DNA of 64,000 nt. It comes from Basidiobolus meristosporus CBS 931.73. Its lineage: Eukaryota > Fungi > Basidiobolomycota. The notes beneath the pieces were generated by a model, which saw nothing but the letters and a program-made list of their open reading frames with translations, ran no database searches and had not been told where the DNA came from. Both the position numbers and the translations under genes were made by a program. Where the stretch lies: the NCBI GenBank assembly GCA_002104905.1, contig MCFE01000187.1, positions 1 to 64,000 on the forward strand, written 5' to 3'. Positions 1 through 36,603 of the stretch are shown here, one piece after another. How positions within the stretch are numbered: the stretch's first letter is position 1; every line of letters starts with the position of its first letter.

Positions 1-19
1 ATCCCACCAAGTCAACTCC

Positions 20-10400: not shown

Positions 10401-11008
10401 ATGCCAGTGACCTGAACAGGCTCCCTAGATGAAAACCAGCTTAGCCTGCAGGACAATGAGTGCTGGTCGATCGTTGCCCGATACGTTTGTCTGTGGCCGG
10501 CCATTTATGTAGTGCTATGCCTGGAGAACGAATACCTGATTGGGTAAAATATCCATAGCGCTATAGATATTTTCATCCGTGTCAATAGGAACCTCTGGTG
10601 TAACGGTACTGGTGTTATGGCAGTTGCTACAAACAATACAAAAGTCGCACTTGCTCGCTTTAGCCTCCTTCAATCGGTGATAGAATACTACTGATTTTGA
10701 CACTGATCTACGCCACATCTTATTAAACAAGGTTGGGGTTTGATCATGATACTGCCAGTTAATAAATCTTATCACCATGGCTAGCAATGAGATGTGGGTG
10801 TACAAATAGGTATCATACTTGAATGTGTGGTGTGGTGTGATGAATAAATCCCAGGCCCCTTCACGACCAAACAGTTCGCATATCACCAAGTTGCCTATTT
10901 GGCATGTAAAAAGAATGGTATTTTGAATTAGCCCATCAGTCAACCGAGTTTTTGTGTTGTGCATTAATTTGCCGGTATTATCACTCTTTGGTCCTCGTCG
11001 TACTCCCA

Positions 11009-11015
11009 TATATAA
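11009..11015 (+). promoter_or_regulatory. Putative TATA box of NRPS1
   Basis: TATATAA followed by GCCAT, 54 nt before the ATG at 11063; the paralog has a matching TATAAAAGCCAT 55 nt before its ATG. Confidence 0.6.
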
Positions 11016-11062
11016 GCCATGGAAATAAAATTCCCGACCCCCAACTACAAGAAGTCTCAACA

Positions 11063-14000
11063 ATGAACTCACCTAAGGCTGGCGTCTGTCAATTCCCACA
11101 TTTGCTAAATGGTGATTCCAAGCACAACACTGCTGTGGTTGGATTTCTTGTTAGTGACTTCAAGGAACTTAATGTGAGCACTATACACAAGCATATCCAT
11201 CTAAGTGGGATTAGCGGCATTGAAAAAGCCCTACTCTACGCTACTTGGACGGTCATGCTGAGCCTGTACACTGGGAACTCAGAGATTACTTTTGGTACAG
11301 GCTTTTTTCATCATCAAACATCGAAGTCACTGTTGGAGGACTTGCACCTCTTCCAGTCAACTTATGATCAAGAAATCGCCAAGCTAAATGTTAGCTGCTG
11401 GTTGAGGCAACTGGCACTTACCCAAACTACGGCTTCTCACGACATTGACGACTTGAATATCCAAGATACCAGTAATTTTAACACGTGTGTCATCTTCTCA
11501 GATCAACAAGGTTCCATAGATACCCACAATCTTAAGGTAATTCATTGCAAATGCGTAGACTCAATTGCCGATGCTAAAGTTCTCCACTTTGATAAGCGAT
11601 ATGCCATATACCTAGAAGTATACCAAAAAGAAGGGAACATTGCTTTCCGCATGTCCTTTGCAAATAACTACCTTGATCAAGACCAGGGAATATTACTTTT
11701 CAACCAGTTTATCTATATTGCTAAAACACTGCTTAACAATCTTGATGCACCCTTGAATACTCTCAATTGGACTCCTGAAAACGAAAAACACTTATTCTTG
11801 ACTGAATGGCAGCAAGGCAAGCCGAATTATGTTCAAGTACTTGATGATAGCTGCATCCATCATCTGATTGAGGAGCAAGTCAAGAGGACACCAAATAGTA
11901 TCGCCCTTCAATTCGAGGACAAAGATTTGGTCACATACTCAGAGTTGAACAAACGGGCCAATAAGCTTGCTCATACGCTGATCCAGATTGGTGTACAACC
12001 CGACAACGTGGTACCAGTATGCATCGAGAAATCCATCCATATGGTGGTTGCTATCCTGGCGGTCCTTAAGGCCGGGGCTGCCTATGTGCCCCTCGATCCT
12101 GAATACCCAAAAGATCGGATTCATTTCATCATACGAGATACAAATGCTAGTGTTTGTATCACCACAAGCAATTTGCAGAGGATGTTTGCTGAGGGACAAA
12201 CCCTTCGATCGCTGACGGTGGATGAGTTCGATTTCTGTGGTGACGAGCGGTCCGAGTTGAACCCCGTCATCCCTGGGTTGAAGTCCTCAAATCTTTGCTA
12301 CCTAATCTTCACCTCAGGCTCCACCGGAAAGCCCAAAGGTGTTATGCTAGAACACCGTTGCGTCGTCAATTACGTAGCTGCTCACCAGAAGATTCTGGAT
12401 TTGTCCCAGGATGACCGGTTCCTCCAGTTCGCCAACTACACCTTTGATGCGTCCATACTTGATCTGTTCGTGAATCTGACCACTGGATCCCGTCTATGCT
12501 TGGCATCGAAGAACAATTTGCTCACAGATCTCCCCGGAATGATGAACCTGATGAAGGTTACTGCAGCACAGCTGACCACAACCGTGGCTTCCCTGGTGGA
12601 TCCGAGCTCCGTGCCTACGCTCAAGCTACTTCAGCAAGGAGGTGAGATGCTCACCAAATCCGTAAGGGATGCTTGGGCCAGCAAAGTCAAGTTGCATAAT
12701 GGCTACGGCCCGACCGAAACCGCAGTCTACACCATCATCAAGCAGTCATTGAAGCCATCGACCTCCTGTGCCAATATCGGGTGGCCCATTGGCCGCAGCA
12801 AAGTTCTCATCCTGAATGATAGGTTGGAGCTGATCCCATTGGGGGCAGTGGGTGAGCTTTGCATTGGTGGACCACAGCTTGCTCGAGGATATCTCAATCG
12901 ACCTGATCTGACGGAAAAGAGCTTCGTCAGCTCCCCATTCAATCATGGCGAACGACTGTACAGAACAGGGGATCTGGGAAGATTCAACCCCGATGGCTCG
13001 ATCACCATCCTTGGGCGGAAGGATAATCAAGTCAAGTTGAACGGGCTGAGAATAGAAATAGAGGAAATAGAGCATGTATTGAACCAATTCCCAGAGGTTA
13101 GCCGCGTATCGGTCAGACTGTTGAATCGGAAGTCGAAGACATCCAAGGTGAGTAAAGTGCTGGTGGCTTTTGTAACTTTCGTCAACAAAATGTCGGATGA
13201 AGAGTCAGTATCTGTTCTTGAGTTGACAAGCTGCCCAGAAGTGGGTCAAGTACAAGAGTCTGTTCGAAAACAGCTTCCACCATATATGGTGCCCACAGTG
13301 TGGGTGCCGTTGACAAAAATGCCCATCAATACTAGCGGAAAGACCGACTTGAAGACTTTGGAACTCTTGTACACAAGCCTCGAAACTGCTCAAGACGTCA
13401 AAGAGGCCAAAGACATGCCCACCTCCGCGATGGAAGTGCTACTGCAAGAGGCTTGGGGTGAGGTGTTGAATGTTGAAAAGTCTTCAATCGGCACTGGTGA
13501 CTCCTTCTATCATTTGGGGGGCGACTCGATCTCCGCCATCCAAATATCCGCCCAATGCCGTCAAAATGGGGTGGAGGTGTCTGTGCAGAGCATATTGCAA
13601 CACCCCACCATCCGTCAGCTGGCAAACTATGCTCGGTTCACGACATTGGCGCTAGAGAAGCAGAGCATAGAGGAGGATGAGGAGGAGGATTGGAGTGACA
13701 TTCCGTTCACCCCAATCCAGCACCAGTTCTTTGGTGTCACCCAGCCTGAAGTCAATCACTTCCATTTGTCGTGGTTGGTGAGTGTCAGGCATCCAATCGA
13801 GCTACCTGCACTGAGAGGTGCGCTATTTGAGCTGATTGGCCATCACGATATGCTCAGGACTCGTTTCACCCAAGAACTAGGTCGCTGGAGACAATGGCTG
13901 GCTTCCAATGAACAGACTAATTTCGAGGTGCAGCGGCATCGAGTCTCTGGTGTTGAAGAGCTGAAGTCGAGTGTACTGAAAACACAACGAAGCCTCAACG

Positions 14001-14990
14001 TTGAGACCGGGCCAGTATCATCGTTTGTGATCTACGATCTACCATCCGGTGAGCAGCTGCTATTCATGACCATCCATCATTACATCATTGATCTTGTTTC
14101 GTGGCGTATCTTTTGGGAGGATCTGGAAAAGCTGCTGAGCGGACAGTCCTTGTCATACAAAACACTGTCATTCAGAAAGTGGAGCAGGCTGCTACAAAAG
14201 CACGCAGAGTCCTTGACGAGTGAGGACTGGCCGCAACAAGCGCCAATCGAGCCGTTGGATATTGATATGTCCAAGCTTTCTCTGAATACCATGGAAACGG
14301 TAGAAACATCATCGTTCACGCTGGATAGTGAGCACACTGCCCTCATGTTCGGTAGAAGCAATGATGCTTACGGGACGGAGGCCGTTGACTTCATGCTTGC
14401 CACTCTCGCCACCTCATACTGTGATGTGTTCCAGACCGATTCGATTACCTTTGCAACGGAAGGTCACGGACGTGAGCCATGGGATGACTCCATCGATGTG
14501 TCCCGGACAATTGGATGGTTTACCTCCATTTATCCAGTCACCATCCAGCGCAAGCGTGGGGATTCTCTGATTGACGTATTGAAGCAGACTAAAGATACCC
14601 GTCGAGCAATTCCTAACCACGGATTGGACTATGGACTTCTTCGCTATCTAAACTCGGAGCTATCCTCTAAATATAGTAGCGATCGCTTCCAGGTTGGCTT
14701 CAATTATTTTGGACGCTTCCAGCATCTGGAGAAGGGTCGCTCTCTGTTCCAGCAAGCTGCGGAGCAGTACACGTTCGATTTGAATATGATTGGTCCCAAG
14801 TGGAGAAGAATGAATGCTATCGAGGTTGAGGTCACCGTACAACGTGACAATCTGAGTGCCTCGATATCTTACAGCAACCAACTACATAATGAGAAGCAGA
14901 TCAACCAATGGCTGCAGGCATGGAAGAGGGACTTGATGGAGGCAGTCCAGATTAGTGGCAACAAGAAGAAGAGAGAACTGACCGTCTCAG
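11063..14990 (+). other. NRPS1 partial starter C domain plus module 1 (A1-T1-E1); boundaries approximate
   Basis: T1 Ser codon at 13526; E1 HHYIIDLVSW at 14075 and EGHGRE; A1 code read by eye D-A-L-Q-Q-G-G-V-Y-K. Confidence 0.85.
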
Positions 14991-17900
14991 ACATCCCGTT
15001 GCTCTGCCTCAATGCTCATCAATTGCACGGACTGTTGGAAGAGGTTGCTGCAAAATATGGCGAAGAGTTTGTGCAAAACATAGAGGACATGTATCCCTGT
15101 TGCGCAATGCAGGAGGGCCTGATCGTCGGGAATGCCCGCTCAGCCTCATCGTATCATGTTCAAGATGTGTACACTCTGCCGGATGGAGTGGACGAGGAAC
15201 AACTACTCTCAGCCTGGAGATCCACAGTCAATGATCTACCCATACTGCGCACCGTGTTTATCGAGAATTCTTACTCCTCACCCACGTTAGGAGCATATCT
15301 CCAAGTCGTTCTGCGACATGTTGATGTCGATTTCCAGCGCATATATCCAGAGAGTCAGGATATCGAAGATGCTGCACTGAACAAATATCTGGAAGCTGAT
15401 GTAGCCAAAGGATTTCCGCTTGGCCGGCCCAACATACGATTATGCTTGATACAGGGTGAGAAGAATCGGATGATTATCAGTCGTCATCATGCTATCAATG
15501 ATGGTTGGTCGGACAAAATCACCATGGCCTACTTGGAAGCCGTCTTTAACAGTACTTCAAGGCCAGCAGTGATCCCATACAAGGAGTATATCTCCTATTG
15601 CGTTAAGCAGAATGGCTCATTGAGCAACGAAGAGGGTGCTGAGTACTGGTCAACCTATCTAGCCGGTATTGATGCCAGCATCTTTCCTAAGCTTGGTGAG
15701 ACAAATGCCCGTGCTGGTCATCACCAAGTTGTGTTCAGATCACAAATTCCCATGCAGGTGCTGAAGGACTTTTCGAAGAAGGCCGGTGTAACCACGCTTA
15801 CCTTATTACAGGCAGCTTGGGGAATGATATTGCAGCCCTACTATGGAAAGGAGGACTTTGTGTATGGCGTGCTCACGAATGGCCGCAATATTTCCATGAA
15901 GCAGATCAATCACGTAGTTGGTCCGTGCATCAACACCACCCCATTAAGGATTCAGTGTCATCCAAGCACCAAGATCATGGATTGGCTAAGATCACTGCAT
16001 CAAAGCATGGTGGCCCGGATTCCATACGAGCATTGTGGTCTAAGACTGATCAAGCAATGGTGCAAACAGAGGAATTCCCAGGTCGGTTTTGATGCTATTC
16101 TCAACTTTCAGTTGTCCGAGAAAGATGATGCAAGGCAAAAGGTGACCTTCGAAATGGAGAGAATAATCGAGCCCACTGAGTATAGGCTTTGTCTTAACGC
16201 ATGGAAAGAAGGGGATAAGCTCGCCTTCAGGTTGGACTTTGACAATGCTACACTGACCAGCCACCTGGCCAATCATTTACTAGATCGCTTGGATGCTGTG
16301 ATTGGTGGCATTGTTGTTGCTGATGGTGAATCCACCGTTGCTGACATTCCATATATGTCAAATGTGGAAAGCAGCTTGATCCAGTCATTCGCTACTGGTT
16401 GCAATCAAGTCGATCCCACGTTGGAATGTTTGCACCACTTATTTGAAAAGCAGGTGGCAAAGACACCCAACAACATTGCCATCCGCTATGGAAATGATTT
16501 GCTTCTTACCTACAATGACCTTAACAAGCAATCGAATCGGTTGGCCCACTACCTGGTTAGTCAAGGAGTTGGGCCAGAGTCAATTGTGATGTTGTGTCTG
16601 GACAAATCGGTAGAAATGATAGTGGCTATGCTGGGAGTGCTCAAAGCTGGAGGCGCGTACGTACCAATAGACCCAGCAAGTCCTGTTGAGAGATCGAGAT
16701 TCGTGCAGAAGGAGACAGAGGCATCAATTGCTATTACAACAAACTCGCACAAAGAGAGATTCGAATACATCACTCTGGTGTTAATTGACAGCGAGATGAG
16801 TGCATTCCGTAACTACTCCTCTGAAAATCTGGATAGGAGCGAGATCACCGAAAAGAATCTGTGCTACGTGTTGTACACCTCAGGTTCTACCGGGACACCG
16901 AAAGGCGTGATGTTGGAACATTTAGCCGTTGTGAATTTCATTCATGCCATTAATGAAGTGTGCCAGCTCACTTACAGCGATACTTTTCTCCAATTCGCCA
17001 ACTACACATTCGATGCTTCAGTATTCGAGATATATGCCCCACTTGCAGTGGGTGCATCAGTAGGGATGATTCGGATGGATCACCTGCTGGCGAATCTAGA
17101 AGAATGGATCGACAAGCTCAAGGTCACCTTTCTGATGCTGACACCAACGATTGCCACAATGATTGATCCGCTCAAAGTACCTTCAATTAGGCGGATCCTT
17201 TTGGGTGGAGAAATGATGACCACTACAGTTCGAAACATATGGCTACCCCATGTGGAGATCAACAACGCCTATGGCCCAACGGAATCGGCTGTTATGATGA
17301 CCATCAATCCTAAAGTACACTCAGACACATCGTGCGCAAACATCGGAAGGGCTGTTGGCAACAATAGAATCTATGTTCTTGGAGCTGATCACCGCCCGGT
17401 TCCGCTTGGAGTTGTTGGGGAACTCTGCGTTGCTGGACCACAATTAGCTCGAGGCTATCTCAACAGATCCGATCTAACCGAGAAGGTATTTGTGACTGGT
17501 CCTTTTGTGTCTGAGCAACGCCTTTACAGAAGCGGAGATCTTGCTCGATTCAATGTCGATGGGACAGTGGAACTTATTGGAAGAATAGACAATCAGGTCA
17601 AGATACACGGGTTGCGAATTGAGTTGGACGAGATAGAGCATGTGCTCCACGAACACTCCAGAGTGGCCAGAGCTTGTGTGATCCCCTTGGTCACTGACCA
17701 GAGTACTAGTCATAAATCTTTGGCTGCTTTCATTACCTTTCATGGACTAGTTGACAATAGCCTGCCTATATGCACGCCTGGCGGACCAAAGAGTGAATTG
17801 TTCTCTTCGTATGTCAAGGAGGCCAGATTAATCGCTCGAAAGAAGCTACCTTCGTACATGGTACCAACTATTTGGATTCCACTTAATAGAATGCCATTTA

Positions 17901-20900
17901 CGACGAGCGAAAAGATCGATCGGAAACACTTGAAATCGTTGTATGCCAGCCTAAGTGCTCATAATCTGAGGCTACTCAATCTTGCTGATGATACTGGCCA
18001 TGCCGGAGCTAGGTCCGATTTGGAGGAAACCTGGGTCAAGCTCTGGTCATCAGTCCTCAATGTTCCATCTGTTGCTATAGGGATTCATGATTCATTCTTT
18101 AATATCGGTGGTGATTCGATCTTGGCTGTACGGCTGGTGGGCGCTGCTCGAAAGGCCCGATTTGCACTAACAGTGCAGGATCTATACACTCATCCAACCA
18201 TTGCTGAGATTGCCGAGAATATTTTTCCGATCGGTTCCGATGGTGTTGAGCCCAAATCAATCGAAAAGTATTCCCTGTTGAGCCTGGAACAATATCAGTT
18301 TGACGAGTTAGTTGAGTGTGATCTCTCTCAGCACGGGATTGATATTGAGGAGGTGGAGGATATATATCCTTGCTCGCCAATGCAAGAGGCTCTAGTAGCG
18401 CTAAGTTTCAAAGATGACTCCAGCTATCTAACCCAGCAGGTGTACAAATGCGGGCCTAATGCTGACATCAAGAAACTTCAGTCCGCTTGGAGGTCAGTGA
18501 TTGAGATAAATCCTATACTTCGGACAGTTATTCTGTTCACGAATAGTGGCTTCAATCATTTGAACGGTTTACAAGTCGTAGTTAGTAACAGCAATGTTGA
18601 CTGGCATGTTCAGGATTTCGAAGATGAAAGGTCGCTTGAAGAGCATCTACCCAAGGTTTTATTAGAGGATAAAGCGCGAGGAATATCTGCCGGAAAGCCA
18701 TTGATTCGGTTCAAGATTCTGACCACTGTGGGCAAAGCAGCATACTTCATATGGACAATCCATCACGCCCTGTACGACGGCTGGTCTATGGGTCAAATAG
18801 TCGCCGACGTGAATGCCGCCTACCAAGGCCTTGGTATGGCTATACGCCCTAATTATAGTCTGTATATCGATTATTTGCTGAGTCAAGATAAGCAACAGGC
18901 TCTACACTATTGGTCGGAAACACTTCGATCAGCGCAAGTTACTCACTTGGCTAGATCAACTGCCCATCATCAGTCCATTCATTCACGAGCCAGATACATC
19001 GAAAATCTTCATATTGATTTTACCACAGTTACTGGTGTCTATAACATAACAGCAGCTACCATCGCATACCTGGCATGGGCGCTTGTGCTGAAATCACATA
19101 CTGGTAATCCAGATGTGATATTTGGCGTAGTGAATTCCGGAAGAGATGCTCCCCTACGAGATATACAAGATATTTGCGGGCCTTGTATCAATACACTCCC
19201 GATGCGGATCACTCTCTCTGACAATCTGTCGCTTTTAGACACGTTGCTATCCATTCAGAATACTCAAAATCAACAGTATCAGTATCAGTCCATCGGCCTT
19301 CAAGATATTCTTAAACACTGCTGTGACAGTGGAGAAAGCGCATTGTTCGATTCCCTATTTGTCGTTCAAAATTTCCGCGATGAAGATGCCACTGTAGACC
19401 TCTCGACTATTGGACTACATCAGTCGGAAGCAACTATGCATATTGCCTACCCTGTAGTGATGGAGATTAGCACTAAGGGAGCTTCTTGCGAGGTTAGCCT
19501 CACGTACGATGCGCAGGCAGTGACTATGTTTGAAGCATCATGGATAGTTAAGCACTTTATTGCAGCGATTGACGTTGTAATCAATAAGTTCCACAGCATT
19601 GTTAGAGATGTGAATATTATCACTTCAGAGGAACTTCGCCTGTTGGAAAGCTGGAATGGCTCTAAGGATACTGTACAACAATCATGTTGTATTCATGAGC
19701 TGTTTGAGCGAAGAACAATAATTCATCCCGATCAGCTAGCAGTTCAATACGAAAACTCCGAAAGTATCACTTACAGTGAGTTAAATATGAAGGCCAACCA
19801 GTTAGCCCACCATCTGATTAAGCTTGGAGTTCGCCCTGACTCGATCGTTCCATTATGTCTCGACAAGTCGATCTCAATGATCGTGGCAATGCTTGCCGTT
19901 CTCAAAGCAGGCGGTGCCTATGTTCCTCTTGATCCGAACAATCCTGTGGAGCGGAACAGATTCATTATTCAGGAGACAAAGGCGGAGGTGGTGTTGACAC
20001 TGGGTCAATATACACAGTACTTCGATGAACGATCCCTGGCTTTGCTCGACATTGAAAACCTGTCGCTGAAACAGTATGACACCACTAACCCGGAAGTGAG
20101 TGGGCTAAATGAGTCGAACCTGTGCTATGTGATCTACACCTCAGGTTCTACAGGGAAACCAAAGGGAGTAATGATGGAGCATCGTGGTGTCTCAAGCTTC
20201 GTTCAGGCATTTAGCCGTGCGTGGGGAATCAACAACGAGGATTCAGTTTTACAATTCGCCAATTATACATTTGATGCGTCAGTTATCGAGATTTTCTGCG
20301 CATTGACCTCGGGAGCAAGTATATCGCTCGCCTCGAAAGATAAACTGCTATTCGATATAGAAATGTGCATAAACACAATGGGTGTGACAACTCTAATGCT
20401 CACGCCAACTATAGCAACATTAATTGACCCTATCAGGGTGCCATCAGTTAAGCGACTCGTGCTGGGGGGTGAAATGATGACTACAGCAGTTCGCGACTTA
20501 TGGTCACCCCATGCCGAGCTTTGTAACGCATATGGTCCAACTGAAGCTGCTGTGGCTATTCTTGCCAATTGGGATATAGCTGCAGATACCATGTGCACGA
20601 ATATTGGTAAGCCAATCGGAAGTAACAAGATTCTAATTATGGGGCCTGACTTACATCCTGTTCCATTGGGTGTGTTGGGAGAGTTGTGTGTTTCAGGCCC
20701 TCAGCTTGCTCGCGGATACCTCAACAGATGCGACTTGACCGAGAAAGTCTTCGTTTCAAGTCCTTTCGTGTCCAACGAGCGCATATACCGAACTGGAGAC
20801 CTGGCTCGGTTCAATGCTGATGGCTCGGTAGAACTGATGGGAAGAATCGACAACCAGATCAAGATCAATGGTTTGCGAATCGAGCTAGATGAGATCGAGC

Positions 20901-23900: not shown

Positions 23901-26900
23901 TATCACCTTTATTTGACACTATCCTCAATTACAAATATGATTCAATGAAGCCTAACCATGCATTGGAAAATGATAAGCTAAGACTTGTTCCACTACACGG
24001 AAAAGAGGCAACTGAGGTAAACATAGATAGAACTATGCATATAGGGAGATGGCTACTAATATTCTACTATCCGATACTGTAGTATCCACTATCGTTAAAC
24101 GTATACGTGAGCAACAATGAAATTTTGTTCAGCTTAGATGCGGTCGGCGATTTAGTTTCCTACTACTTTGTTGAGCAAATCGCCAACAGCTTTACATCCG
24201 TGTTTGAGTCATTTATTGCTTTACCTTCAAACACACAGCTTCAACATATTCCCATACCACTAGAGAGCACTGCTTCTGCTGCTTATCCTACGGCATCAAA
24301 CGTACCCTCAGAGAATATAGTGTTATGTATACATCACCTCTTCGAGCGACAAGCTAAGCAATCACCTCAAAATTTAGCAGTTCAGTTCGAAAGCTCAGAA
24401 TACGTCAGTTATGATGAACTTAACAGCAGAGCCAACCAGCTAGCCCACCATCTGATTAAGCTTGGAGTTCGCCCTGACTCGATCGTTCCATTATGTCTCG
24501 ACAAGTCGATCTCAATGATCGTGGCAATGCTTGCCGTTCTCAAAGCAGGCGGTGCCTATGTTCCTCTTGATCCGAACAATCCTGTGGAGCGGAACAGATT
24601 CATTATTCAGGAGACAAAGGCGGAGGTGGTGTTGACACTGGGTCAATATACACAGTACTTCGATGAACGATCCCTGGCTTTGCTCGACATTGAAAACCTG
24701 TCGCTGGAACAGTATGACGCCACTAACCCGGAAGTGAGTGGGCTAAATGAGTCGAACCTGTGCTATGTGATCTACACCTCAGGTTCTACAGGGAAACCAA
24801 AGGGAGTAATGATGGAGCATCGCGGAGCATCAAGTTTCATTCAAACATTCAGTCGAGAATGGGGCATTGACTCCACTGATACCGCACTGCATTTCACTAA
24901 TTATACATTCGATCCCTCAGTGATTGAACTATTCTGCTCATTGGCAGTTGGTGCGTCAATCGCAATTGCCTCCAAAGACAGTCTTCTTTCTAATCTAGAG
25001 CTATGTATAAATACCATGAATGTCACGGCAATGGCTCTCACACCGACGGTTATCAATCTGATCGATCCTGTCAAGGTGCCATCAGTTAAGCGACTCGTGT
25101 TAGGTGGCGAAATGATGACCATAGGAATCCGTGACTTATGGTCACCTCATGTTGAACTTTGTAACGCATATGGTCCTACTGAAGCTGCTGTGGCTATTCT
25201 TGCCAACTGGAAGATGACTACCGAAACAGTGTGCACGAACATTGGCAAACCGATTGGAGTCAACACTGTTCTGATGATGGGGGCTAATATGAAGCCGGTA
25301 CCATTTGGTGTGATAGGCGAACTATGCCTCACGGGTCCTCAGCTTGCCCGTGGATACCTCAACAGATGCGACTTGACCGAGAAAGTCTTCGTTTCAAGTC
25401 CTTTCGTGTCCAACGAGCGCATATACCGAACTGGAGACCTGGCTCGGTTCAATGCTGATGGCTCGGTAGAACTGATGGGAAGAATCGACAACCAGATCAA
25501 GATCAATGGTTTGCGAATCGAGCTAGATGAGATCGAGCATGCTCTCCATGACCACTCAAGAGTGGCCAGAGCGTGTGTGATGGCTCTGATCACTGACCAG
25601 AAGACCAGTCGTAAGTCGCTGGTGGCCTTCATGACATTCCAGGGGCTGGAGATGGCTCATGCTGATCCCAAGTTCTTGAGTGAGCTTGAGGCCGAGCCCG
25701 CCTATGAATACATCGAGGAGCTGAAGGTTATTTGCCAGAAGAAATTACCTACATACATGGTCCCCAATCTATGGCTACCGCTCAGCACTATGCCAGTCAA
25801 TACTAGTGGGAAGATTGACCGCCGCAAGTTGTCAGATCTCTTCGTATCCTCGAACCTCGATGAGATCACGAGACTGTCCAAGTGTGGAAACGGACAGTGG
25901 AGACAACTCACAACACCCTTGGAGGTGAAGATCCAGGCGATATGGTCGGAGACGCTGAACATTCCGGCCGCCAGCATCACTGCCGATGACACATTCTATC
26001 AGCTAGGCGGTGACTCCATTTCAGCCATTCGAGTTTCGTCACTCTGTCGTCAGAGTGGGATCTCACTCTCGGTGAAGCAGATCATGCAAAACCCCACCAT
26101 CCGTTCGCTTGCCTCAGTTGCCACCATCCAGGAAGCTGTTGCCGACGAGTCTCCTCAGTGCTCCGATGGCGATGTTATCCTCACGCCAATCCAGAGACGC
26201 TTTCTGGGAGCCCCTCAGGATAACATGCATCACTTCAATCAATCGTGGCTTCTGAAATTACGGGAACCTACGACGAAGGAGGTACTCACCCGAGCAATCT
26301 TTGCCTTGGCAAAGCATCACGACGTGCTTCGTGGTCGATTCCCAGAGACTCAAGGGGAACGGAGGATGACAGTCGTGCCAATGAACGAGGTCTCCTTGCA
26401 AGTCCACCACCGCCAGGTGAGATCAGTTGCAGAGCTGAAGGAGCACACCCATCAGCTGCAACGAAGTCTCAACTTGGCCACTGGACCCATGTTCCATTTC
26501 TCACTGTATGAGCTGGAAGATGAATCCCAGCTACTGTTCATGACCATCCACCATCTAATCGTTGATCTGGTGTCATGGCGCATCATATGGGAGGACTTGG
26601 AGCAGCTGCTTCAGGGCAAGGGATGTGGGTACAAGTCGATGAGCTTCATGCAATGGAGTGCCATGCTCAACGAGTACGCCCAAGAGCTAGAGATTGACAT
26701 GTGGCCGTCTCAGAAGGTTTCTGAGCCGATAGTGAGTGATGCATCTCTCCTGGCACAGAACACATTTGAATCCACCAGATCCGTCTCCTTCACCTTGTTG
26801 GCCACCCAGACCGAAAAGCTCTTTGGCAAGTGTAACCTTCCATTCCAGACCGAAGCGACTGACCTGATGATCTCCTCGCTAGCCATTGCTTACTGCAAGG

Positions 26901-29900
26901 TATTCAATGTAGATAGCATGACCATCGGCATGGAGGGGCACGGAAGAGAGACCTGGCGTGATGGGATTGATGTGTCGAGAACTGTCGGCTGGTTCACCAC
27001 ACTCTACCCATTCGTCGTGGAGATAGCTCATCGCTCGGATCACTTGAGTATTCTGAAGAGAGTCAAGGATCAGCGCAAGCTGATGCCAGGGAATGGTATT
27101 GTCTATGGACTACTCCGGTACTTGAGCAACAAGCCTGACAATCCATTCAGGGATGATGTGATCCAGATTGGGTTCAACTACCTTGGCCGTTTCCAGCAAC
27201 TGGAGAGTAAGAACTCATTCTTTGAGCCGGTCGGAGCTCCTTACAACTTTGATCCGGCGGAAGTTTGTTTCGAGCGTTGCAGGGACCATGTCTTTGACAT
27301 CGTTGCTAATGTTGTTCATGACAGTTTCACAGCTGGAATCACTTACAATCCCAACTTGCACTCGGATGAAATCGTATCGGAATGGCTTTCTGCATGGAAG
27401 GACTCGCTCAACACTTTGATCGACAGTTGTGCCTCAATGGATGATGTGGAGCACACCCGAAGTGATTTCCCGCTAGTGAAATTCAGTGAAGCAGAGTTCG
27501 ACCTGTTCTACAATCAAAACCTGCCAAATATCGGAGTCGAGCGTAATCTCATTGAAGATATTCTACCATGCACCCCGTTGCAGGAAGGACTGATAGCTGG
27601 TATGTTCAAGGATGCCAATTACTACCATGTTCAGCAACAGTTTGAGATTACTGGTGACTTCAACCTGGCCAAGTTCCAAAATACGTGGGAAACCCTTGTT
27701 CGGGATCACGCCATTCTACGCACTGTTTTTGCAGAGTTTTCCACAATTGCATCACGCTTTAACTTCTTGCAGGTTGTGATGAAGCCCTCTAGACTTGACT
27801 GGTCTTTTGTTCACTGCACGCATAATTCTCTGGCGGAAACCATCACTGAAAATCTAGTTGCCGACAAAGCCAAATCCTTTCAGCTAGGTCAACCTAATTT
27901 AAGATTTATCTTGGTGGAAACGGATTTACAACACCGCGTACTCCTCATCAACTGGCACCATGCTATTCTTGATGCCACAGCGTGGGATATTGTACTGAAT
28001 GACTTCTACCATGTATATCATCAAAAAGCTCGTGTGGAAACCTATCCATTCGCGAAGTTTGTGGAGGAACTGTGTAGTAAACCCTCACAAGAACTAGATG
28101 CCGGGAAATCCTACTGGCAGGGTAAACTCTCACAGCTCAGCATTCCCCAATTCCCAAATCTGGGGGTCTCTAAGGACCTTTCTTCCACATTTTGTCGTGT
28201 AGAAGGCTCTATTGAAATCCCAATCAATAGGATTTCACAATTCGCTCAACGTCTTAACGTAACTCCATTTATATTGATCAAAGCAGCTTGGGCAATTCTA
28301 TTGCGGGAGTATACCCGCAGTGAGGATGTGGTCTTCGGGTATGTGATCAACGGAAGAAATGGTGAACTTGAAGGCGTTTCGACTATTGTTGGCCCGTGCA
28401 TCAACACCATTCCTTGTCGCGTGCATTGCGAGAGCGAGGGGAATGTTGTAACATGGCTGCAGGAAATCCATCAGAGCTACATATCCGACCTTTCCTATCA
28501 ACAGAACAGTTTGAGAGATATTCAAGAATGGGTGGGAACATCCCCACTGTTCGACACTATTATTAATTATAGGGTTGGCGACTCGTCTGGGACCGACACT
28601 ACTAATATTCGCAATGAAACGGAAGCAGAAAATGGGATTAAGCTTGTCCCGAAAGTCAGTAATGAAAGAACAGAGGTTGGAAAGGGGATTTATAGTAACT
28701 TGATGCAATCGTGTTACTAATGCAACGTATGGCTAATTCACTCTATCTTATAGTATGCATTAGTATTGAACATCGGCTCAAGCGGCAGTGAATATGTGTT
28801 CATTATCGATGCCAACGGTACACTGATACCACGACAATTTGTGAATCAAATTGCAAATGACTTCAAAACACTTTTTGGAGCCATGGTGCATGCAGTTCCT
28901 GACACCCAGATCAGTGATTTCTGTGTTTCGTTAAGCAAGACCCAAGCTCCCGTGACCAACCCGGCAACTACTTCATCTTGCCTAACGACGACAGATAGGT
29001 GTATTCACCAACTGTTCGAGGAGCAGGCAAAAGTGAATCCTCAGCGCATAGCGATCCAGTTTGAACTCTGTGAGTCTGTCTCTTATGAGGAGCTCAACTG
29101 CAGAGCTAACCAGCTGGCTCATCATTTGATTAAGCTTGGTGTCCGCCCAGAGTCAATGGTGCCCTTGTGCCTTGACAAATCTGTTGAAATGGTAGTGGCA
29201 ATGCTTGCTGTTCTCAAGGCTGGTGGTGCTTATGTTCCCCTTGATCCGAACAATCCAGTCGAGCGCAACAGATTCATCCTTGCTGAGACAAATGCACAGG
29301 TTGTAGTGACACTGGATGTGTACAGATCTACTTTCGATACAGTGACTGTGGTGCTCCTTGACTCCGACCTGGATCGTATTCGCACAAATCCCGAGGATAA
29401 TCCCGAGGTCACTGGCTTGAGTAGCTCGAACCTTTGCTACGTTCTGTTCACCTCTGGCTCAACCGGAACACCGAAGGGAGTGATGCTAGAGCACGCCGCG
29501 GTGGTTAGCTTCATTCACGCAATCCAACAAGAGTACGACTTCAGCCCCAAAGACTCGATACTGCAGTTCGCCAACTACACCTTCGATGCTTCGGTGTTCG
29601 AGATATACGTTCCCCTTGCCATCGGAGCTTCCGTAGCTATGGCACGAAAGGACTACCTACTCACGGATCTTGAGGAATGTATCAGGGAGCTGAGAGCAAC
29701 ATTTTTGATGCTGACCCCTACAATTGCTACTCTGATTGACCCACTTGAGGTCCCATCGGTACGGAACCTGATGTTCATAGGGGAGATGCTGACAACCACT
29801 GCACTGAACAAGTGGTCGCCGTATGTCGACCTGAGCAACGGTTACGGGCCGACTGAGTCGGCAGTCCTGACGACTGTCAACACGCAAATGAGCTCGACTA

Positions 29901-32900
29901 CCTCATGCTCGAATGTCGGCAAGCCAATCGGAAACAATAGGCTCTATGTTCTCGGTGACGACAACTACCCTGTTCCGTTCGGAGTGGTTGGTGAGCTTTG
30001 TGTTGCTGGATCCCAGCTCGCTCGGGGCTATCTGAACAGACCTGATCTGACGGACAGCGCGTTCATCACAAGCCCGTTCGTGTCGGCAGAACGTCTGTAT
30101 AAGACTGGGGACCTTGCTCGATTCAATAGTGACGGATCGGTGGAGCTGGTTGGGAGAAAAGATAACCAGATCAAGATCCATGGGCTGAGAATCGAGTTGG
30201 ATGAAATCGAGCATGCTCTCCATCAGCACTCCAAAGTCGCCAGAGCGTGTATTGTTCCTTTGGTCACTGACAAAGCCACTGATCACAAATCACTGGTTGC
30301 CTTTGTGACTTTCAACGACCTCGCTGACAGCAACTCACCGGTTGGTCTGATCGAGGAAAGTAACGACCAGAAGGTTGTAGAGTACTTCAAGGAGATCAAG
30401 GCACTTCTTCGGAAGAAACTATCTACTTACATGCTGCCTAACATATGGGTTCCTTTGAATAGAATGCCTACCACAACGAGTCAGAAGACAGATCGAAAGA
30501 GCCTAGCTGCACTGTATGCATCCGTGGATAAGGAGGATTTGATGAAGTGGAATCATTCCGACGCCTCTGGCCACGTTGGAGCAAGAACAGCAATGGAGCA
30601 GAGCTGGGTGGAACTCTGGTCGGCGGTTCTCAAGATCTCTCCAGATACGATTGGATCGCACGACTCTTTCTTCAGTCTCGGAGGTGACTCTATCCTAGCC
30701 ATCAGGCTGGTGGGTGTTGCTCATAAGGCTGGGTTCACGCTGACAGTCCATGATCTATATTTACATCCTACTATTGCTGAGCTTGCAATCACTTGTTTCC
30801 CCTTAAGCTCAGCAATTCCGGAAACCATGCCGGTTGAGAAATACTCCCTGCTCAAATTGGATGTTGAACAACTAGACCAAATGATTGAATACGAACTACC
30901 TCAGCATAACATTATGCCTGACGATGTCGTTGACATCTACCCCTGCTCTCCGATGCAAGAGGCACTTGTGGCTCTGAGCCTACAAGACAGCTCGAGCTAT
31001 GTCAGTCAGCTTGTGTACAAGTGCGAAGGCAACGTGGACCTGGAGCGACTTCGCGCCGCCTGGCACTCGGTGATTGAAGCAAACCCCATTCTTCGAACAG
31101 CGATCTTGTTCACCACTAGTGGCTTTGCTCATCTGAATGGCCTACAGGTTGTTCTTCGTAGCAAGAGCATAGAGTGGGATGTTCAGGAGTATGAGGATGC
31201 CACCTCGCTCGAAAACAGCTTGGCTCGAGCTTTGGAAGCTGACAGGTCTAAAGGAGTATCTGTGGGGCAACCACTGACTCGGTTCGCTTTGCTGAAGACC
31301 GCAGGCCCGAATGCATACCTCGTATGGACCATTCATCATGCCTTGTACGATGGCTGGTCTATGAATCACATCGTGTCGGATGTAGTGGCTGCCTATCAAG
31401 GTCATGATTTGCCGGCCAGACCACCGTACAGCATGTACATCAACTACCTGTTAGACACGGACAAGAGTCAAGCCATCAAGTACTGGAAGGAGAACTTGAG
31501 CTCAGCAACTTCAACACATTTAGGTGGCAATTCTCGAACTACTGAAGAGACGCAAATATCATCTGCAATCATTGAGAACATCCAGGCGGACTTCAGTTTA
31601 CTTGCTAGTGAACATAGCCTTACAATAGCTACCGTTGCATATTTAGCCTGGGCCATGGTGCTGAAGTATCATACTGGTAATCCGGACGTAGTGTTTGGAG
31701 TGGTGGACTCAGGTAGGAGCATTCCTCTCCACAACGTTCAAGATATTTGCGGTCCCTGTATCACGACATTGCCCACCCGCATCAATCTCTCAGATACTCA
31801 ATCCCTTTTGGATGCTCTGCGATTGATCCAAAACGCCCAGATTCAGCAACGTCAGTATCAGTCTATCGGGTTGCAGGATATTCTCAGGTATTGCTGTGAC
31901 ACGAGTGAAAGCTCACTCTTCGACACCCTCCTGGTTGTTCAAAATATCAACCAGGAGGGCGATAATGGAGGACTCTCTTCCATCGGCTTGGTGCAGTCTG
32001 TCACGTCTATGCCTATAGACTATCCAATTGTTATGGAGATAAGCTCTGAAGGCACGGATCACACAGTTGCTCTGACGTATAATGCGAAGATCTTGACCGA
32101 GTTTGAAGCATCCTGGATTATGAAGCATTTTGTGGAGGCGATCAAGGCGATTCTCTCCAATGTTCACGCTGCTGTCAAAGATGTCAGGGTTACAACTGCG
32201 GCAGAATTAGAGCTCATCGAGAGTTGGAGTACCGTAAGAAACACTGCATTACAATCTGAGTGCATTCATAGGTTTATTGAGCAACAGGCATTGCTCCACC
32301 CAGAGCATGTTGCAATCCAGTTCGAGGATACTGAATATGTTACTTATGGCGAACTCAACCGCAGAGCTAACCAGCTGGCTCATCATTTGATCAAGCTTGG
32401 TGTCCGTCCTGACTCCATAGTACCTCTCTGTCTTGATAAATCAGTTTCAATGGTAGTGGCAATGCTTGCAGTGCTTAAAGCCGGTGGTGCCTATGTTCCG
32501 CTTGACCCCAACAACCCTGCGGAGCGAAATGAATTCATTCTAAGGGAGACAAATGCTGAAGTCGTTATTACTTTAGATACATACAAGCAGAATTTCGACG
32601 GCCGAACCTGTGTTCTACTTGATTCTGAGGATCTGTCGCTGGTACAGAACTGCATTGATAACCCTCAGGTGATCGGTCTGGAGAATTCTAGCTTATGCTA
32701 TGTAATATATACCTCTGGCTCCACTGGATTGCCCAAGGGAGTGATGATGGAGCACCGAGGTGTTTCAAGCTTCATCCAAGGATTCCAGTACGTATGGAAC
32801 ATCGACGTATCGGACTCAGTCCTACAATTTGCCAATTATACCTTTGATGCATCCGTGATTGAGATATTCTGCGCATTGGCTGCAGGTGCCTGTGTTGCAC

Positions 32901-35900
32901 TTGCTTCCAAGGAGAATCTTCTCTCTAATATTGAGTGGTGCATCAACACCATGAATGTGACTTCACTGATGCTTACACCAACCGTGGCCACCTTAATTGA
33001 TCCTACCAAGGTGCGTTCCGTGAAGCGACTAGTGCTGGGTGGTGAGATGATGACAACGGCAGTCCGTGATTTATGGTCACCTTATGCCAAGCTGTACAAT
33101 GCCTACGGGCCTACTGAGGCTGCGGTGGCTATTTTAGCCAACTGCAACATTACCGAGGATACACTGTGTAGCAATATCGGCAAACCAATTGGAAGCTGCA
33201 AGATCGTGATCCTGGGAACTGATCTACAACCTGTGCCACTGGGCGTGACTGGTGAACTGTGTGTATCAGGTCCCCAGCTCGCTCGTGGCTATCTCAACCG
33301 ACCTGACCTTACGGAAAAGGCATTCGTGACCAGTTGCTCGGAACCTGATATCCGGATCTATCGCACCGGCGATCTGGCACTATTCAATGAGGATGGAACG
33401 GTCAAGATTGTTGGTAGAATCGACAACCAGATCAAGATCAACGGTTTGCGAATCGAGTTGGATGAGATCGAGCACGCTCTTCACGATCACTCAAGAGTGG
33501 CCAGAGCGTGTGTGATGGCACTGACCACTGACACGAAGACTAACCGCAAGTCGTTGGTGGCCTTCTTGGCATTCTACGGTACGGAGAGTATAACTACCAC
33601 TACAGAATTGCTTAAGGGCTCGCAAGCCAAGTCGGCCTCTGTGTACGTAGAGGAATTAAAATTGGCTGTGGGTCAGCGGCTACCATCATATATGATTCCA
33701 AATGTATGGCTACCGCTGAACATCATTCCGATCAACACCAGCGGAAAGGTGGATCGTCGTAAACTAGCCGATATCTTCGCATCTTTCAGTAATGATGACA
33801 TCTCAAAGATAATCATGGATGGAAAGGAGCGTGGCAATGAAGCAGTCACTTCATCAATTGACAGCGCTGGAGAGTCGTGGAACGATTTCGACGAGGTATC
33901 AAAGCCTCAAAATTCCATGCAACGCTTTATTCAAGAAGTCTGGTCCAAGGTGTTGAAAATTCCTCAGAGTAACATCGGCATCAACCACACTTTCCGCTCT
34001 CTGGGCGGGGATTCTATTTTGGCCATTCATGTTTCTTCCGAATGCCGTAAGCACAACATTCAGATCTCAGTACACAGCATGTTGAAAAATCACACCATCA
34101 TCCAACTGGCTGAGAACGCCAAAGTGAAAGCATCAGGAAATCAGATGGAGAACTCGTTGAGCCATGGCGAGGTTCATCTCTCTGCCAATCAACGGATGTT
34201 CTTGGAATTCGAGCAGGAGAACTACAACCACTTCAATCAGAGCTGGCTGTTCAGAATGCAGAACCCAACGAACAAGGCCAGTCTCCAATCGGCAGTTGGA
34301 TACCTCATCCTGAATCATGATATCCTTCGAAGCCGGTTCTCGCGTACACAGAACGAATGGAAGCTACGAGTTCTATCGCCAAAGGAGATGACGTTTGAAG
34401 TCCACCGTATGCAGGTCCAATCGAGAGACGAATTGAAGGCTTCTGTCCATCATCTTCAGCGTAGCCTGGATTTGATATCTGGACCTTTGTTCCAATTCGC
34501 TCTGTACGACTTACAGGATGGCCAACAGCTGATCTTCATGGCCGTCCATCACTTTATCATTGACCTTATGTCCTGGGGCCCTATCTGGGAGGAACTTGAA
34601 CTCCTACTTCGAGGGGAAACCCCCGTTGGCCAGTCCACATCGTATATGCAATGGAACAAAGCACTCTACGATTATGCCCAGACCTTGGAAATGGGGGCAT
34701 GGCCTACACAACCCCAGACGCCACCCATTATCTCGGACACGGAACTGCTGGCTAGAAACACCTTTGAATCCACAAATTCGATCTCTTTCAGACTCGACCC
34801 TTACTTTACGAGATTAGCCGAAACCTCCTGCGGGGCGACTACGAATGTAGAAGTGATCGATCTGTTGATTGCTTCGCTGGCATATTCTTATTGTTGTACA
34901 TTTGAGAGAGACTCTCTTTCAATTACCCTAGAAACCCATGGGCGCCAGCACAGGGATGAGGATGTGGACATTTCGAGGACTGTAGGCTGGTTCACCAATT
35001 TGTATCCGATTGTCGTACAATTGGGTACAAACCAACGTATGGAAGACGCCATTCGTCAAACCATCCTGCAGCATCGTGACATCCGTGGAAACGAGGTAAA
35101 CTACGGTCTTTTGAGGTACATGAACCAAAGAACCGCCTCATTGTTCGAAAAGGAGCCACCGCAAGTTACCCTAGGATACATGCCAAACACGGCAGCCCAT
35201 GGCCACTCTAGCTCCTGCTTACTTCCCATTTCACCTGACTCAGAGTACAAATTCGACCTGGGTGGCATTCCTTCCACATGGAAACGTCATCAAGTCTTCA
35301 ATTGTGCCGCACAGTATGTGGGAGACCAGCTTGAGGCCAGTATCACCTACAGCGAAGCACTCCATTCCAAATTTGAGGTACAGCCCTGGCTCGACCTATG
35401 GGAAACTGAATTGATAGATGCTATCAAGGCCATTTCGCAAGAAGCAACATCACCATGCGAATACTCCCAGCGTTACGTTCTACCATCTGAAAATGGGATT
35501 CTTTCGCCTCCACCGGAAGGGGATTCTTTTGTGAATGACAGCAAGGCGAATGCGGACGACTGCCTGACGTTGATCTCGAAGAACAGTGGCCCGACAATGT
35601 TTATCGTACATTGCGCTACTGGGGTGGGCAGCTACTTCCAGCTTTTGGGTCAATATATGAACTGCACCCTGTATTCCATCAGTGACCCCACTCTTGGAAC
35701 CAATGAATCATTTGACTCGGTGGAGACGATCGCCTCGAGATATCTGAAGGCAATTCTTCAGGTGCAGCCAGATGGGCCCTATTATCTGCACGGGTACTCG
35801 TTTGGTGGTCTGGTCGCCTTCGAGATTGCGCGTCAGCTCGAGCGGCAGGAGCGAGTGGTCGCGAGATTGACCATTATTGACACGCTGGCACCGCATACCG

Positions 35901-36247
35901 GGCGACAGATTTGGACTTCTGCCAATCAAAGCTCTGCCCGCGAGTATCTGACCATGATCTCTTCCTCAGGTGAATGGTCGTTGGACGAAGCCGCCTCCCA
36001 AATGATTTTAGAGAAGATCGAGGAGAACACTCAACTGATGAGGAAATACGAGCCTGTAGCCAAGCGGTTGGCCACCGATATCGTGTTGGTGAAAGGACTA
36101 GGCGCCAAGGGTACATTTGGCGAGCAGAAAACCTGCTACGGCTGGTCGGAACACTCGACCAACGTGGTTGTTCACAGCGTGGAGGCCGAACATCACGAGC
36201 TGATGTTTGAGCCGCATGTAGCCAGGATTGCCCAGTATCTCCAATAG
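11063..36247 (+). CDS. NRPS1: hexamodular nonribosomal peptide synthetase, join(11063..24016, 24083..28675, 28754..36247), about 8346 aa; C0-A-T-E-C-A-T-C-A-T-E-C-A-T-E-C-A-T-C-A-T-E-TE
   Basis: Six A domains (TSGSTGxPKG, YGPTE, YxTGDL), six T domains (GGDSI), four E domains (HHxIxDLxSW, ExHGR, RTxGWFT), five full C domains (HHAxxD) and a terminal TE (GYSFGG, IIDT, EHH). The three track ORFs join in frame through two phase-0 introns. The start was moved from the track's 10952 to ATG 11063 by comparison with the paralog. Confidence 0.93.
11715..16701 (+). repeat. About 5.0 kb near-identical copy of 48596..53582 (A1-T1-E1-C and start of A2)
   Basis: Constant offset 36881; many shadow ORFs in the track are duplicated at this offset; only scattered substitutions. 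Confidence 0.95.
15070..18240 (+). other. NRPS1 module 2 (C-A2-T2); boundaries approximate
   Basis: C motif HHAINDGWS; T motif IGGDSIL; A2 code D-A-F-M-L-G-A-V-M-K, similar to published Leu-type codes. Confidence 0.85.
18340..22830 (+). other. NRPS1 module 3 (C-A3-T3-E2); boundaries approximate
   Basis: HHALYDGWS; LGGDSIS; HHLIVDLVSW and EGHGRE; A3 code D-A-I-M-V-G-A-V-A-K. Confidence 0.85.
19793..20184 (+). repeat. 392 bp near-identical copy of 24431..24822 (N-terminal part of A3 and A4)
   Basis: Offset 4638; only a few substitutions visible. Confidence 0.9.
20699..23023 (+). repeat. About 2.3 kb near-identical copy of 25337..27661 (A C-terminus, T, E, start of C)
   Basis: Offset 4638; shadow ORFs 20701/25339, 21064/25702 and 21607/26245 are duplicated. 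Confidence 0.95.
22910..27470 (+). other. NRPS1 module 4 (C with intron 1, A4-T4-E3); boundaries approximate
   Basis: HHAILDATSW; LGGDSIS; HHLIVDLVSW; A4 code D-P-I-A-V-G-A-V-A-K. Confidence 0.85.
24017..24082 (+). other. Spliceosomal intron 1 of NRPS1 (66 nt, phase 0)
   Basis: GTAAAC donor after codon GAG; TACTAAT branch site at 24054-24060; TAG acceptor. Splicing gives KEATE|YPLSLNV, matching the uninterrupted EPTEYRLCLN in the first full C domain. Confidence 0.88.
27550..30810 (+). other. NRPS1 module 5 (C with intron 2, A5-T5); boundaries approximate
   Basis: HHAILDATAW; LGGDSIL; A5 code D-A-F-M-M-I-G-V-L-K. Confidence 0.85.
28676..28753 (+). other. Spliceosomal intron 2 of NRPS1 (78 nt, phase 0)
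   Basis: Atypical GTTGGA donor after codon GAG; GCTAAT branch site at 28732-28737; TAG acceptor. Splicing gives NERTE|YALVLNI, the same position as intron 1. Confidence 0.8.
29102..31486 (+). repeat. About 2.4 kb highly similar copy of 56671..59055 (NRPS1 A5-T5-C versus NRPS2 A3-T3-C)
   Basis: Offset 27569; shadow ORFs 29230/56799, 29653/57222 and 31142/58711 are duplicated; colinearity continues at lower identity to about 32408/59977. Confidence 0.92.
30920..35440 (+). other. NRPS1 module 6 (C-A6-T6-E4); boundaries approximate
   Basis: HHALYDGWS; T6 Ser codon at 34013; E4 HHFIIDLMSW at 34547, ETHGRQ, RTVGWFT; A6 code D-A-I-M-V-G-A-V-A-K, the same as A3. Confidence 0.85.
35570..36247 (+). 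other. NRPS1 C-terminal type I thioesterase domain
   Basis: GPYYLHGYSFGGLVAFEIARQL (Ser codon at 35798), LTIIDT, EHHELM. Confidence 0.9.
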
Positions 36248-36308: not shown

Positions 36309-36603
36309 CGGAACTCTTAACCATATCATAGTACCTGAGTAACCAGCGTCCGTGACCTTTGGAACCAATTAATCCCACCTGTCCGACATGGCCACTACCA
36401 CATTCCGCACGAATCGCTTTTCAAGTGATCTGGTCGGTCATACATTTTGTCCACCTGATAGTGGTAGAGTTGTTGAGCAATTGGGGGCACGCATATAATG
36501 GGTGAGAAGCTGGCCAATACACACATCAAGTAGCTCTATTTCACCATCCACTAAGTGTCTCTGCCATTACTCCCTTTGCCTGTGACTTGACTTTGTTGTT
36601 AGT

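Follow-up and report, generated by a model that had tools for sequence, protein, structure and literature searches.

The first 64,000 nucleotides of contig MCFE01000187.1 of the frog-gut fungus Basidiobolus meristosporus CBS 931.73 (hereafter the window) contain a large gene at positions 11063-36247 of the plus strand. We consider it likely that the gene is intact and encodes a six-module non-ribosomal peptide synthetase (NRPS), linear and colinear, that makes a hexapeptide of D-L-D-D-L-D configuration and releases it by a thioesterase (TE), and that it belongs to a recombining Basidiobolus family whose adenylation (A), condensation (C) and epimerization (E) domains are of fungal descent. The gene is real, intact-looking and uncharacterised, ordinary in kind and of moderately interesting evolutionary placement; its novelty is modest, since the kind is known and the paralogues were already catalogued in 2020 (Tabima et al., 2020; PMC7466969). 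The present analysis adds corrected gene models, evidence against a bacterial origin of the C domains and a possible link to the Pes1/NPS4 synthetases of ascomycetes.

The domain order, read by motif scans and by profile hidden Markov models (HMMs) built from the gene's own domains, is a partial C domain followed by A-T-E-C-A-T-C-A-T-E-C-A-T-E-C-A-T-C-A-T-E-TE, in which T is the thiolation (carrier) domain. Pfam finds six AMP-binding, six PP-binding and nine Condensation-fold domains and one Thioesterase, with E-values down to 1e-261; PP-binding is matched in all pieces of the NRPS and Thioesterase at 4e-28. The features of the gene, in window coordinates, are as follows.

11063..36247, plus strand: whole NRPS gene from ATG to stop, from open reading frames (ORFs) and motif scan
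11063..11812, plus strand: N-terminal C-domain remnant, C-terminal half, no HHxxxD, by alignment to C2-C6
11852..13636, plus strand: module 1, A1-T1; code DALQQGGVYK (polar pocket)
13655..14974, plus strand: E1, HHYIID and EGHGRE
15065..18226, plus strand: module 2, C2 (after-E subtype, HHAINDGWS)-A2-T2; code DAFMLGAVMK
18338..21487, plus strand: module 3, C3 (after-T subtype, HHALYDGWS)-A3-T3; code DAIMVGAVAK
21491..22810, plus strand: E3 (the second E domain), HHLIVD and EGHGRE
22898..26125, plus strand: module 4, C4 (after-E subtype, HHAILDAT; holds intron 1)-A4-T4; code DPIAVGAVAK
24017..24082, plus strand: putative intron 1, 66 nt, GTAAAC...TACTAAT...TAG, in frame, holds a stop; inside C4
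26129..27448, plus strand: E4 (the third E domain), 98 % identical to E3
27536..30799, plus strand: module 5, C5 (after-E subtype; holds intron 2)-A5-T5; code DAFMMIGVLK
28676..28753, plus strand: putative intron 2, 78 nt, GTTGGA...TTACTAAT...TAG, in frame, holds stops; inside C5
30911..34123, plus strand: module 6, C6 (after-T subtype)-A6-T6; code DAIMVGAVAK, the same as that of A3
34127..35452, plus strand: terminal E (E6), HHFIID and ETHGRQ; pre-TE subtype kept across the family
35507..36244, plus strand: type I thioesterase, Ser (GYSFG)/Asp/His

All six A domains carry motifs A3, A7 and A8 (TSGSTGxPK, Y[RK][TS]GD and GRxDNQ[VI]K) together with Lys517, every T domain reads GGDSI around the phosphopantetheine serine (6/6), and the five C domains keep HHxxxD in the form HHA[IL][NYL]D. 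All four E domains retain both catalytic residues, His in HHxxxD and Glu in EGHGRE; the terminal one (E6) is a diverged subtype that reads ETHGRQ, with the catalytic Glu in place, and has LGYMP where the others have FNYLG. The N-terminal ~250 aa match the C-terminal half of a C domain only and lack HHxxxD. The initial annotation, made from the sequence without database searches, had described a six-module NRPS with a TE, four E domains with both catalytic motifs, GGDSI in every T domain and a partial N-terminal C domain, and in all of this it is borne out by the Pfam, motif and HMM maps; it had also given EDIYPCSPMQE as the start of the C domains, which is exact at C3 and replaced by variants at C6 (VDIYPCSPMQE), C2 (EDMYPCCAMQE) and C4 and C5 (EDILPCTPLQE). 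The C domains that follow an E domain are of a subtype distinct from those that follow a T domain, as a split into D-acceptor and L-acceptor domains requires. The gene has no dual E/C domains (the E domains stand alone, and no second HH motif occurs at the aligned start of any C domain), no lipo-initiation C domain and no T-C-T-C tail of the ferrichrome type.

Three plus-strand ORFs in the same frame (10952-24082, 24107-28720 and 28766-36247) span the gene, whose ATG at 11063 and stop codon at 36245-36247 are exactly the limits first proposed for it. Immediately upstream there is a TATATAA box at about 11010 and a 15-codon upstream ORF (11019-11066), the TGA of which overlaps the NRPS start codon (ATGA). 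Between the three ORFs lie the two stop-containing stretches that the initial annotation had also taken for introns. Both have GT-AG ends, ACTAAT branch sites and lengths divisible by three, and the second is placed in C5 at the position homologous to that of the first in C4. After excision the junctions read ATE/YPLSLNV (C4) and RTE/YALVLNI (C5) and match, without gaps, both C2 (EPTEYRLCLNA), which has no intron, and the TEY motif found in all paralogue proteins, and because a conserved motif is thus restored gap-free we read both stretches as introns, which would be spliced to give three exons and a protein of 8,346 aa. An alternative intron 2 at 28659-28763, with a better donor (GTAATG), was dropped, as it would remove conserved residues around the TEY motif. 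In the diverged parts of the gene dN/dS is 0.12-0.41, both against the paralogue 351909 and between modules 3 and 4, and therefore points to purifying selection; together with homology, these signatures of selection suggest that the gene may be spliced and expressed.

The ten Stachelhaus positions of each A domain were read from alignments, and the same extraction applied as a control to a Paenibacillus protein with fusaricidin-synthetase architecture recovered the textbook order Thr-Val-Tyr-Thr-Asn-Ala. Asp235 and Lys517 are kept in all six A domains, which should therefore activate alpha-amino acids. For A1 the pocket is polar and the code recurs, with at most one change, in the first modules of the family members found, while the pockets of A2-A6 are lined by aliphatic residues; module 1 probably takes a polar amino acid and modules 2-6 probably take hydrophobic ones. 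Each residue would be loaded onto a GGDSI carrier domain, and from the domain order D residues are expected at positions 1, 3, 4 and 6, as the initial annotation had proposed, these being the positions that the in-line E domains would epimerize. The C domains after E would accept a D-configured donor and the other C domains an L donor. The last residue would be epimerized by the specialised terminal E, and the Ser-Asp-His thioesterase would then free the hexapeptide as a macrocycle or as a free acid, between which the sequence cannot distinguish. Only about fifteen natural products are recorded from all Zoopagomycota (PMC10478498), none of them linked to a gene; the six-module gene and its paralogues are concrete candidates for the D-containing peptides of Basidiobolus.

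By sequence, the gene is an uncharacterised member of a Basidiobolus family that includes 351909, 377413 and several B. ranarum genes. The initial annotation had called the NRPS stand-alone, and in this it was mistaken: 351909 lies in tandem 11.7 kb downstream, within a giant ORF that runs from 47851 to the end of the window.

47935..64000, plus strand: tandem paralogue (JGI 351909), ATG at 47935; seven modules once completed from the protein model; runs off the window

The translation of this paralogue is effectively 100 % identical to K493DRAFT_351909 of B. meristosporus CBS 931.73, since two gaps in the model account for every apparent mismatch, and the early-diverging host for which Basidiobolus had been thought plausible is thereby identified. 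The architectures of the family, read with profile HMMs built from the domains of the six-module gene, are the following.

Six-module NRPS gene: 6 modules, D-L-D-D-L-D
351909: 7 modules, D-L-L-D-D-L-D
377413: 6 modules, D-L-L-L-D-D
B. ranarum K7432_001523: 4 modules, D-L-L-D

The members found start with A-T-E, and the complete ones end with A-T-E-TE, a special E-TE pair. They share this start and end, the first code DALQQGGVYK and monophyletic A, C and E clades, and differ in the number of modules, the pattern of E domains and the internal specificity codes. The E domains form three positional subclades (first-module, internal and pre-TE), and the diverged pre-TE subtype is kept wherever a family member has an E domain before the TE, a conservation between two species that argues for its being functional. 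The genes of the family are mosaic in build. Codons 301-1800 (~4.5 kb; 11963-16462 against 48835-53334) are 99.4-100 % identical in DNA to 351909, with flanks at 62-78 %, which reflects either recent gene conversion or collapse of the assembly. Within the gene, modules 3 and 4 (19688-28960) are 95-99.8 % identical in the C-terminal part of the A domain, the T domain and the E domain (the T-E block), whereas the A core (aa 3050-3200) is only 70 % identical, with a dS of 1.7, and C4 and C5 about 65 %; the codes of A3 and A4 differ at two of the ten positions (DAIMVGAVAK versus DPIAVGAVAK). With its conversion tracts, duplicated T-E block and swapped A cores, the family appears to be a natural example of the rebuilding of an assembly line.

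The descent of the domains was examined with FastTree on 184 E domains, 588 C domains and 620 A domains, a set in which other Dikarya NRPS families are thinly sampled and the other E-containing ones are absent. All Basidiobolus domains of each type (A, C and E) fall in a single clade, and their nearest neighbours are fungal: Caloplaca and Cudoniella, then Spizellomyces and Dimargaris. In an IQ-TREE tree of E domains, a well-supported branch (SH-aLRT, the Shimodaira-Hasegawa-like approximate likelihood-ratio test, 99) has 27 bacterial E domains to one side of it, together with three from a single unplaced metagenome protein, and the Basidiobolus domains form one clade (98); the E tree alone does not separate the relations among the fungal groups. 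In the C tree, the Basidiobolus C domains that follow E are sister to the ascomycete C domains that follow E (SH-aLRT 78) and those that follow T are sister to their ascomycete counterparts (SH-aLRT 94), both pairs lying within an all-fungal clade (98). The same tree contains a positive control, in that a Mortierella NRPS groups with bacteria, matching the bacterial origin published for its group (bioRxiv 10.1101/2020.08.21.262279). The approximately unbiased (AU) test rejects the joining of the Basidiobolus after-E C domains to bacterial after-E C domains (p 1.7e-4) and also a topology that puts every Basidiobolus C domain on the bacterial side (p 1.7e-5). It is mainly because of the C tree and the AU tests, with which the A and E trees agree, that we assign the A, C and E domains of the family to fungal descent, and the combination of a fungal-type body with TE release that the initial annotation had pointed out is thereby upheld.

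Several points count against the reading of the locus as a colinear hexapeptide synthetase of fungal descent. Fungal specificity codes are poor predictors of substrates, and since a comparison of the codes with Fusarium NRPS4-like proteins also gave no usable match, we name no amino acids. The donor of intron 2 (GTTGGA) is weak or unusual, the sequences in the trees were drawn solely from two word-seeded searches, and the groups compared in the AU tests were named only after the tree had been inspected. Colinearity may fail, since related fungal enzymes reuse modules: FgNRPS4 uses its module 5 twice (PMC10967133). The known peptides of Basidiobolus are cyclic pentapeptides, with no hexapeptide among them (PMC10964425), and peptides cyclised by a TE or CT domain usually carry an L residue at the C-terminus (bioRxiv 10.1101/2020.08.21.262279), where a D residue is predicted here.

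The enzyme could instead be active and non-colinear, with reuse or skipping of modules or an inactive E domain giving a product of another length or stereochemical pattern, such as one of the known cyclic pentapeptides, which hold both D and L residues and have no gene linked to them. The reuse of the last module by FgNRPS4 fits this explanation, as do the divergence of the terminal E and the near-duplication of modules 3 and 4. We nevertheless think it unlikely, because every module and every E domain keeps its catalytic residues, because the terminal E, though diverged, is the same subtype in different species and so is probably functional, and because the number of modules varies within the family (4, 6, 6 and 7), as expected if the module count sets the length of the peptide.

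Should the in-frame stops be real, no six-module enzyme would be made, and the locus would consist of three separate ORFs or be a pseudogene, either decaying or silent. No protein model of the gene was found in public sets, the surrounding region is poor in genes and adjoins a retrotransposon, and the unusual donor of intron 2 could be seen in the same light. Decay is nonetheless quite improbable for a reading frame with just two interruptions in 25 kb, both of them multiples of three with GT-AG ends and ACTAAT sites at homologous positions, the excision of which restores a conserved motif gap-free; all catalytic motifs are intact, moreover, and dN/dS is well below 1.

The paralogues 351909 and 377413 have been listed as candidates for horizontal transfer from bacteria on the basis of their best RefSeq hits (Tabima et al., 2020; PMC7466969), and by extension the six-module gene could be a fairly recent acquisition from bacteria, cyanobacteria having been named, that gained its introns later. 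With the paralogue as query, the best match outside Basidiobolus by total score is indeed a Paenibacillus NRPS, and the best-scoring Paenibacillus proteins have fusaricidin-synthetase architecture and codes (Thr-Val-Tyr-Thr-Asn-Ala). Identity is, however, about 30 % to the best bacterial and the best fungal matches alike, and we attribute the high total score to the shared number of modules and E domains, not to close kinship, which would also explain the best-hit calls. Transfer could be argued, too, from the nearest relatives of the TE outside the genus, which are bacterial-style or metagenomic, from T-(C-fold)-TE ends, which are common among bacterial clusters, and from the presence of only two introns in 25 kb. 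It is very unlikely all the same, given the position of the family within fungal C clades, where both C subtypes pair with ascomycetes, the rejection of bacterial placements by the AU tests, the consistency of the E and A trees, the grouping of the Mortierella NRPS with bacteria in the same C tree and the absence of dual E/C and lipo-initiation C domains. A bacterial origin of the C domains is thus disfavoured, a result with which the A and E trees agree, the TE alone excepted, and the domain trees contradict the published best-hit inference. The last alternative, a siderophore synthetase, takes up the reading by Tabima et al. of the Basidiobolus expansion in the 'SIDE' clade as siderophore biosynthesis (44 CBS 931.73 A domains fall in this siderophore-labelled clade, PMC7466969, and the family could account for many of them), and it can be set aside as highly improbable in view of the four E domains, the aliphatic pocket codes, the lack of a ferrichrome-type T-C-T-C tail and the failure to find an ornithine monooxygenase or acyltransferase in the flanks.

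No characterised synthetase that matches the six-module NRPS was found, in keeping with the initial annotation, which did not recognise it as a characterised enzyme; the known Basidiobolus peptides are without a linked gene. The ascomycete neighbours in the trees belong to a widespread Pezizomycotina family of proteins of 6,800-7,950 aa with the architecture (partial C)-A-T-E-C-A-T-C-A-T-E-C-A-T-C-A-T-E-C-T-C and a release end of C-T-C(-T). The proteins used for comparison, none of them itself characterised, are either named Pes1 by their source or matched to that architecture, and in an atlas comparison the nearest eukaryotic cluster is a Pes1 cluster. We note that this architecture fits the logic of Fusarium NRPS4, which makes fusahexin from D-Ala, L-Leu, D-allo-Thr, L-Pro and D/L-Leu (PMC10967133), and also the rule that the 'water-repellent peptide' (WARP) synthetases Pes1, HcpA, NPS4 and NRPS4, reported from Ascomycota only, have an E domain in every other module (bioRxiv 10.64898/2026.07.13.738209). 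Synthetases of the Pes1/NPS4 type appear to be the closest named relatives of the Basidiobolus family, in the C tree for both subtypes and in agreement with the E and A trees.

The Basidiobolus enzyme shares with Pezizomycotina Pes1, NPS4, NRPS4 and HcpA (the synthetases of fungisporin and fusahexin) the partial N-terminal C domain, the A-T-E start, mostly hydrophobic pockets and in-line E domains that have their own C subtype after them. The aliphatic pockets of its modules 2-6 hint, suggestively only, at a product like the cyclic hydrophobic ones of that group, on which surface hydrophobicity depends. The differences are considerable. The Pes1/NPS4 type strictly alternates its E domains (D-L-D-L-D), whereas the six-module NRPS has two adjacent E modules (D-L-D-D-L-D); the former ends in C-T-C and the latter in E-TE; an ABC transporter gene adjoins the former, and Pfam finds none in 18 flank ORFs of the latter; and overall identity is only about 30 %. 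Since strict alternation, C-T-C release and the ABC neighbour are all missed, we do not file the Basidiobolus family as a member of the WARP group. It is possible, and we put this forward tentatively, that the A-T-E...E-TE family, which belongs to an early-diverging fungus, is the sister lineage of the ascomycete Pes1/NPS4 WARP synthetases. If this were so, the split of D- and L-acceptor C domains and the epimerized first residue would predate the divergence of Zoopagomycota and Dikarya, and the family would have kept or regained release by a TE, a task for which Dikarya employ a CT domain. Its hydrophobic D/L peptides, among them perhaps cyclic peptides of the basidiosin type, could then act at the cell surface, and these genes would have been wrongly called bacterial transfers in the literature. 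The link matters for dating the origin of fungal D/L-peptide assembly lines and for deciding which release mode, TE or CT, is the ancestral one in fungi.

Two other systems resemble the enzyme in part. MpcA and MpbA of Mortierella alpina, which make malpicyclin and malpibaldin, are likewise multi-modular and TE-terminated, come from an early-diverging fungus, have a truncated starter C domain and make D-rich hydrophobic peptides; they differ in their bacterial dual E/C domains and bacterial descent, the Basidiobolus NRPS having stand-alone E domains and C domains of apparently fungal descent. In ACV synthetase, a terminal E directly precedes the TE and the last residue is epimerized before release. 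The E-TE end is the only likeness to this enzyme, and it is found also in bacterial NRPSs ending T-E-TE; ACV synthetase has three modules (A-T-C-A-T-C-A-T-E-TE) and fixed substrates, against six modules here, and no zygomycete A domain was placed in the ACV clade by Tabima et al. (PMC7466969). The TE itself is distant from all others. Its catalytic Ser (GYSFG), Asp and His align to the TE structures of EntF and NocB, the nearest solved TEs, and a HMMER search of 1.84 billion representatives returned only three proteins below 1e-30, with no Dikarya TE near it. The best match outside Basidiobolus, at 33 % identity, is a metagenomic protein of three C-A-T modules with a bacterial-style tandem TE, and across the whole domain no protein from outside the genus exceeds 33 % identity. 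ACV synthetase did not turn up in the other TE searches. The TE may have been retained from an ancestor or acquired separately.

The six-module gene is apparently missing from public protein sets. Its protein is not among the proteins of 2,944-9,366 aa similar to its N-terminal 2,450 aa, nor among those of 1,373-4,370 aa that carry its TE, a comparison that shorter fragment models could escape, and exact look-ups of the exon-1 ORF, one flank ORF and the retrotransposon ORF were blank. For 351909 the public model (7,961 aa) contains errors: it begins ~290 codons late, near 48799 rather than 47935, omits two coding blocks (52798-53634 and 54565-56184) and splices out two in-frame stretches, 52282-52335 and 63895-63954, that encode conserved C-domain residues (e.g. 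GPCINTLP). The true gene has seven modules. The published counts of modules and A domains for B. meristosporus are therefore probably too low.

The flanks of the six-module gene (3.1-11 kb and 36.3-47.9 kb) are gene-poor and of 37-43 mol% G+C. Their 18 ORFs have no Pfam match, by which intron-split genes could be missed, and no tailoring or transport gene (ABC transporter, ornithine monooxygenase and acyltransferase included) was found among them by Pfam. At the left edge of the window, 8 kb upstream of the NRPS gene, a Ty3/gypsy pol ORF (2-3085, plus strand, 1,028 aa, open at the edge) encodes reverse transcriptase, RNase H, integrase, Tf2-type SH3 and chromodomain regions and represents a chromovirus-type retrotransposon that is probably recent. 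Between the two NRPS genes there is an intergenic minisatellite (42885-43148) with units of 61-74 nt rich in CTAAAGGGG. Two diverged direct copies of ~400 nt (36597-36991 and 38907-39316), 74-85 % identical and separated by 2.3 kb, overlap ORFs of the minus strand without Pfam matches; the copies may be what is left of a small gene pair or of some repeated element.

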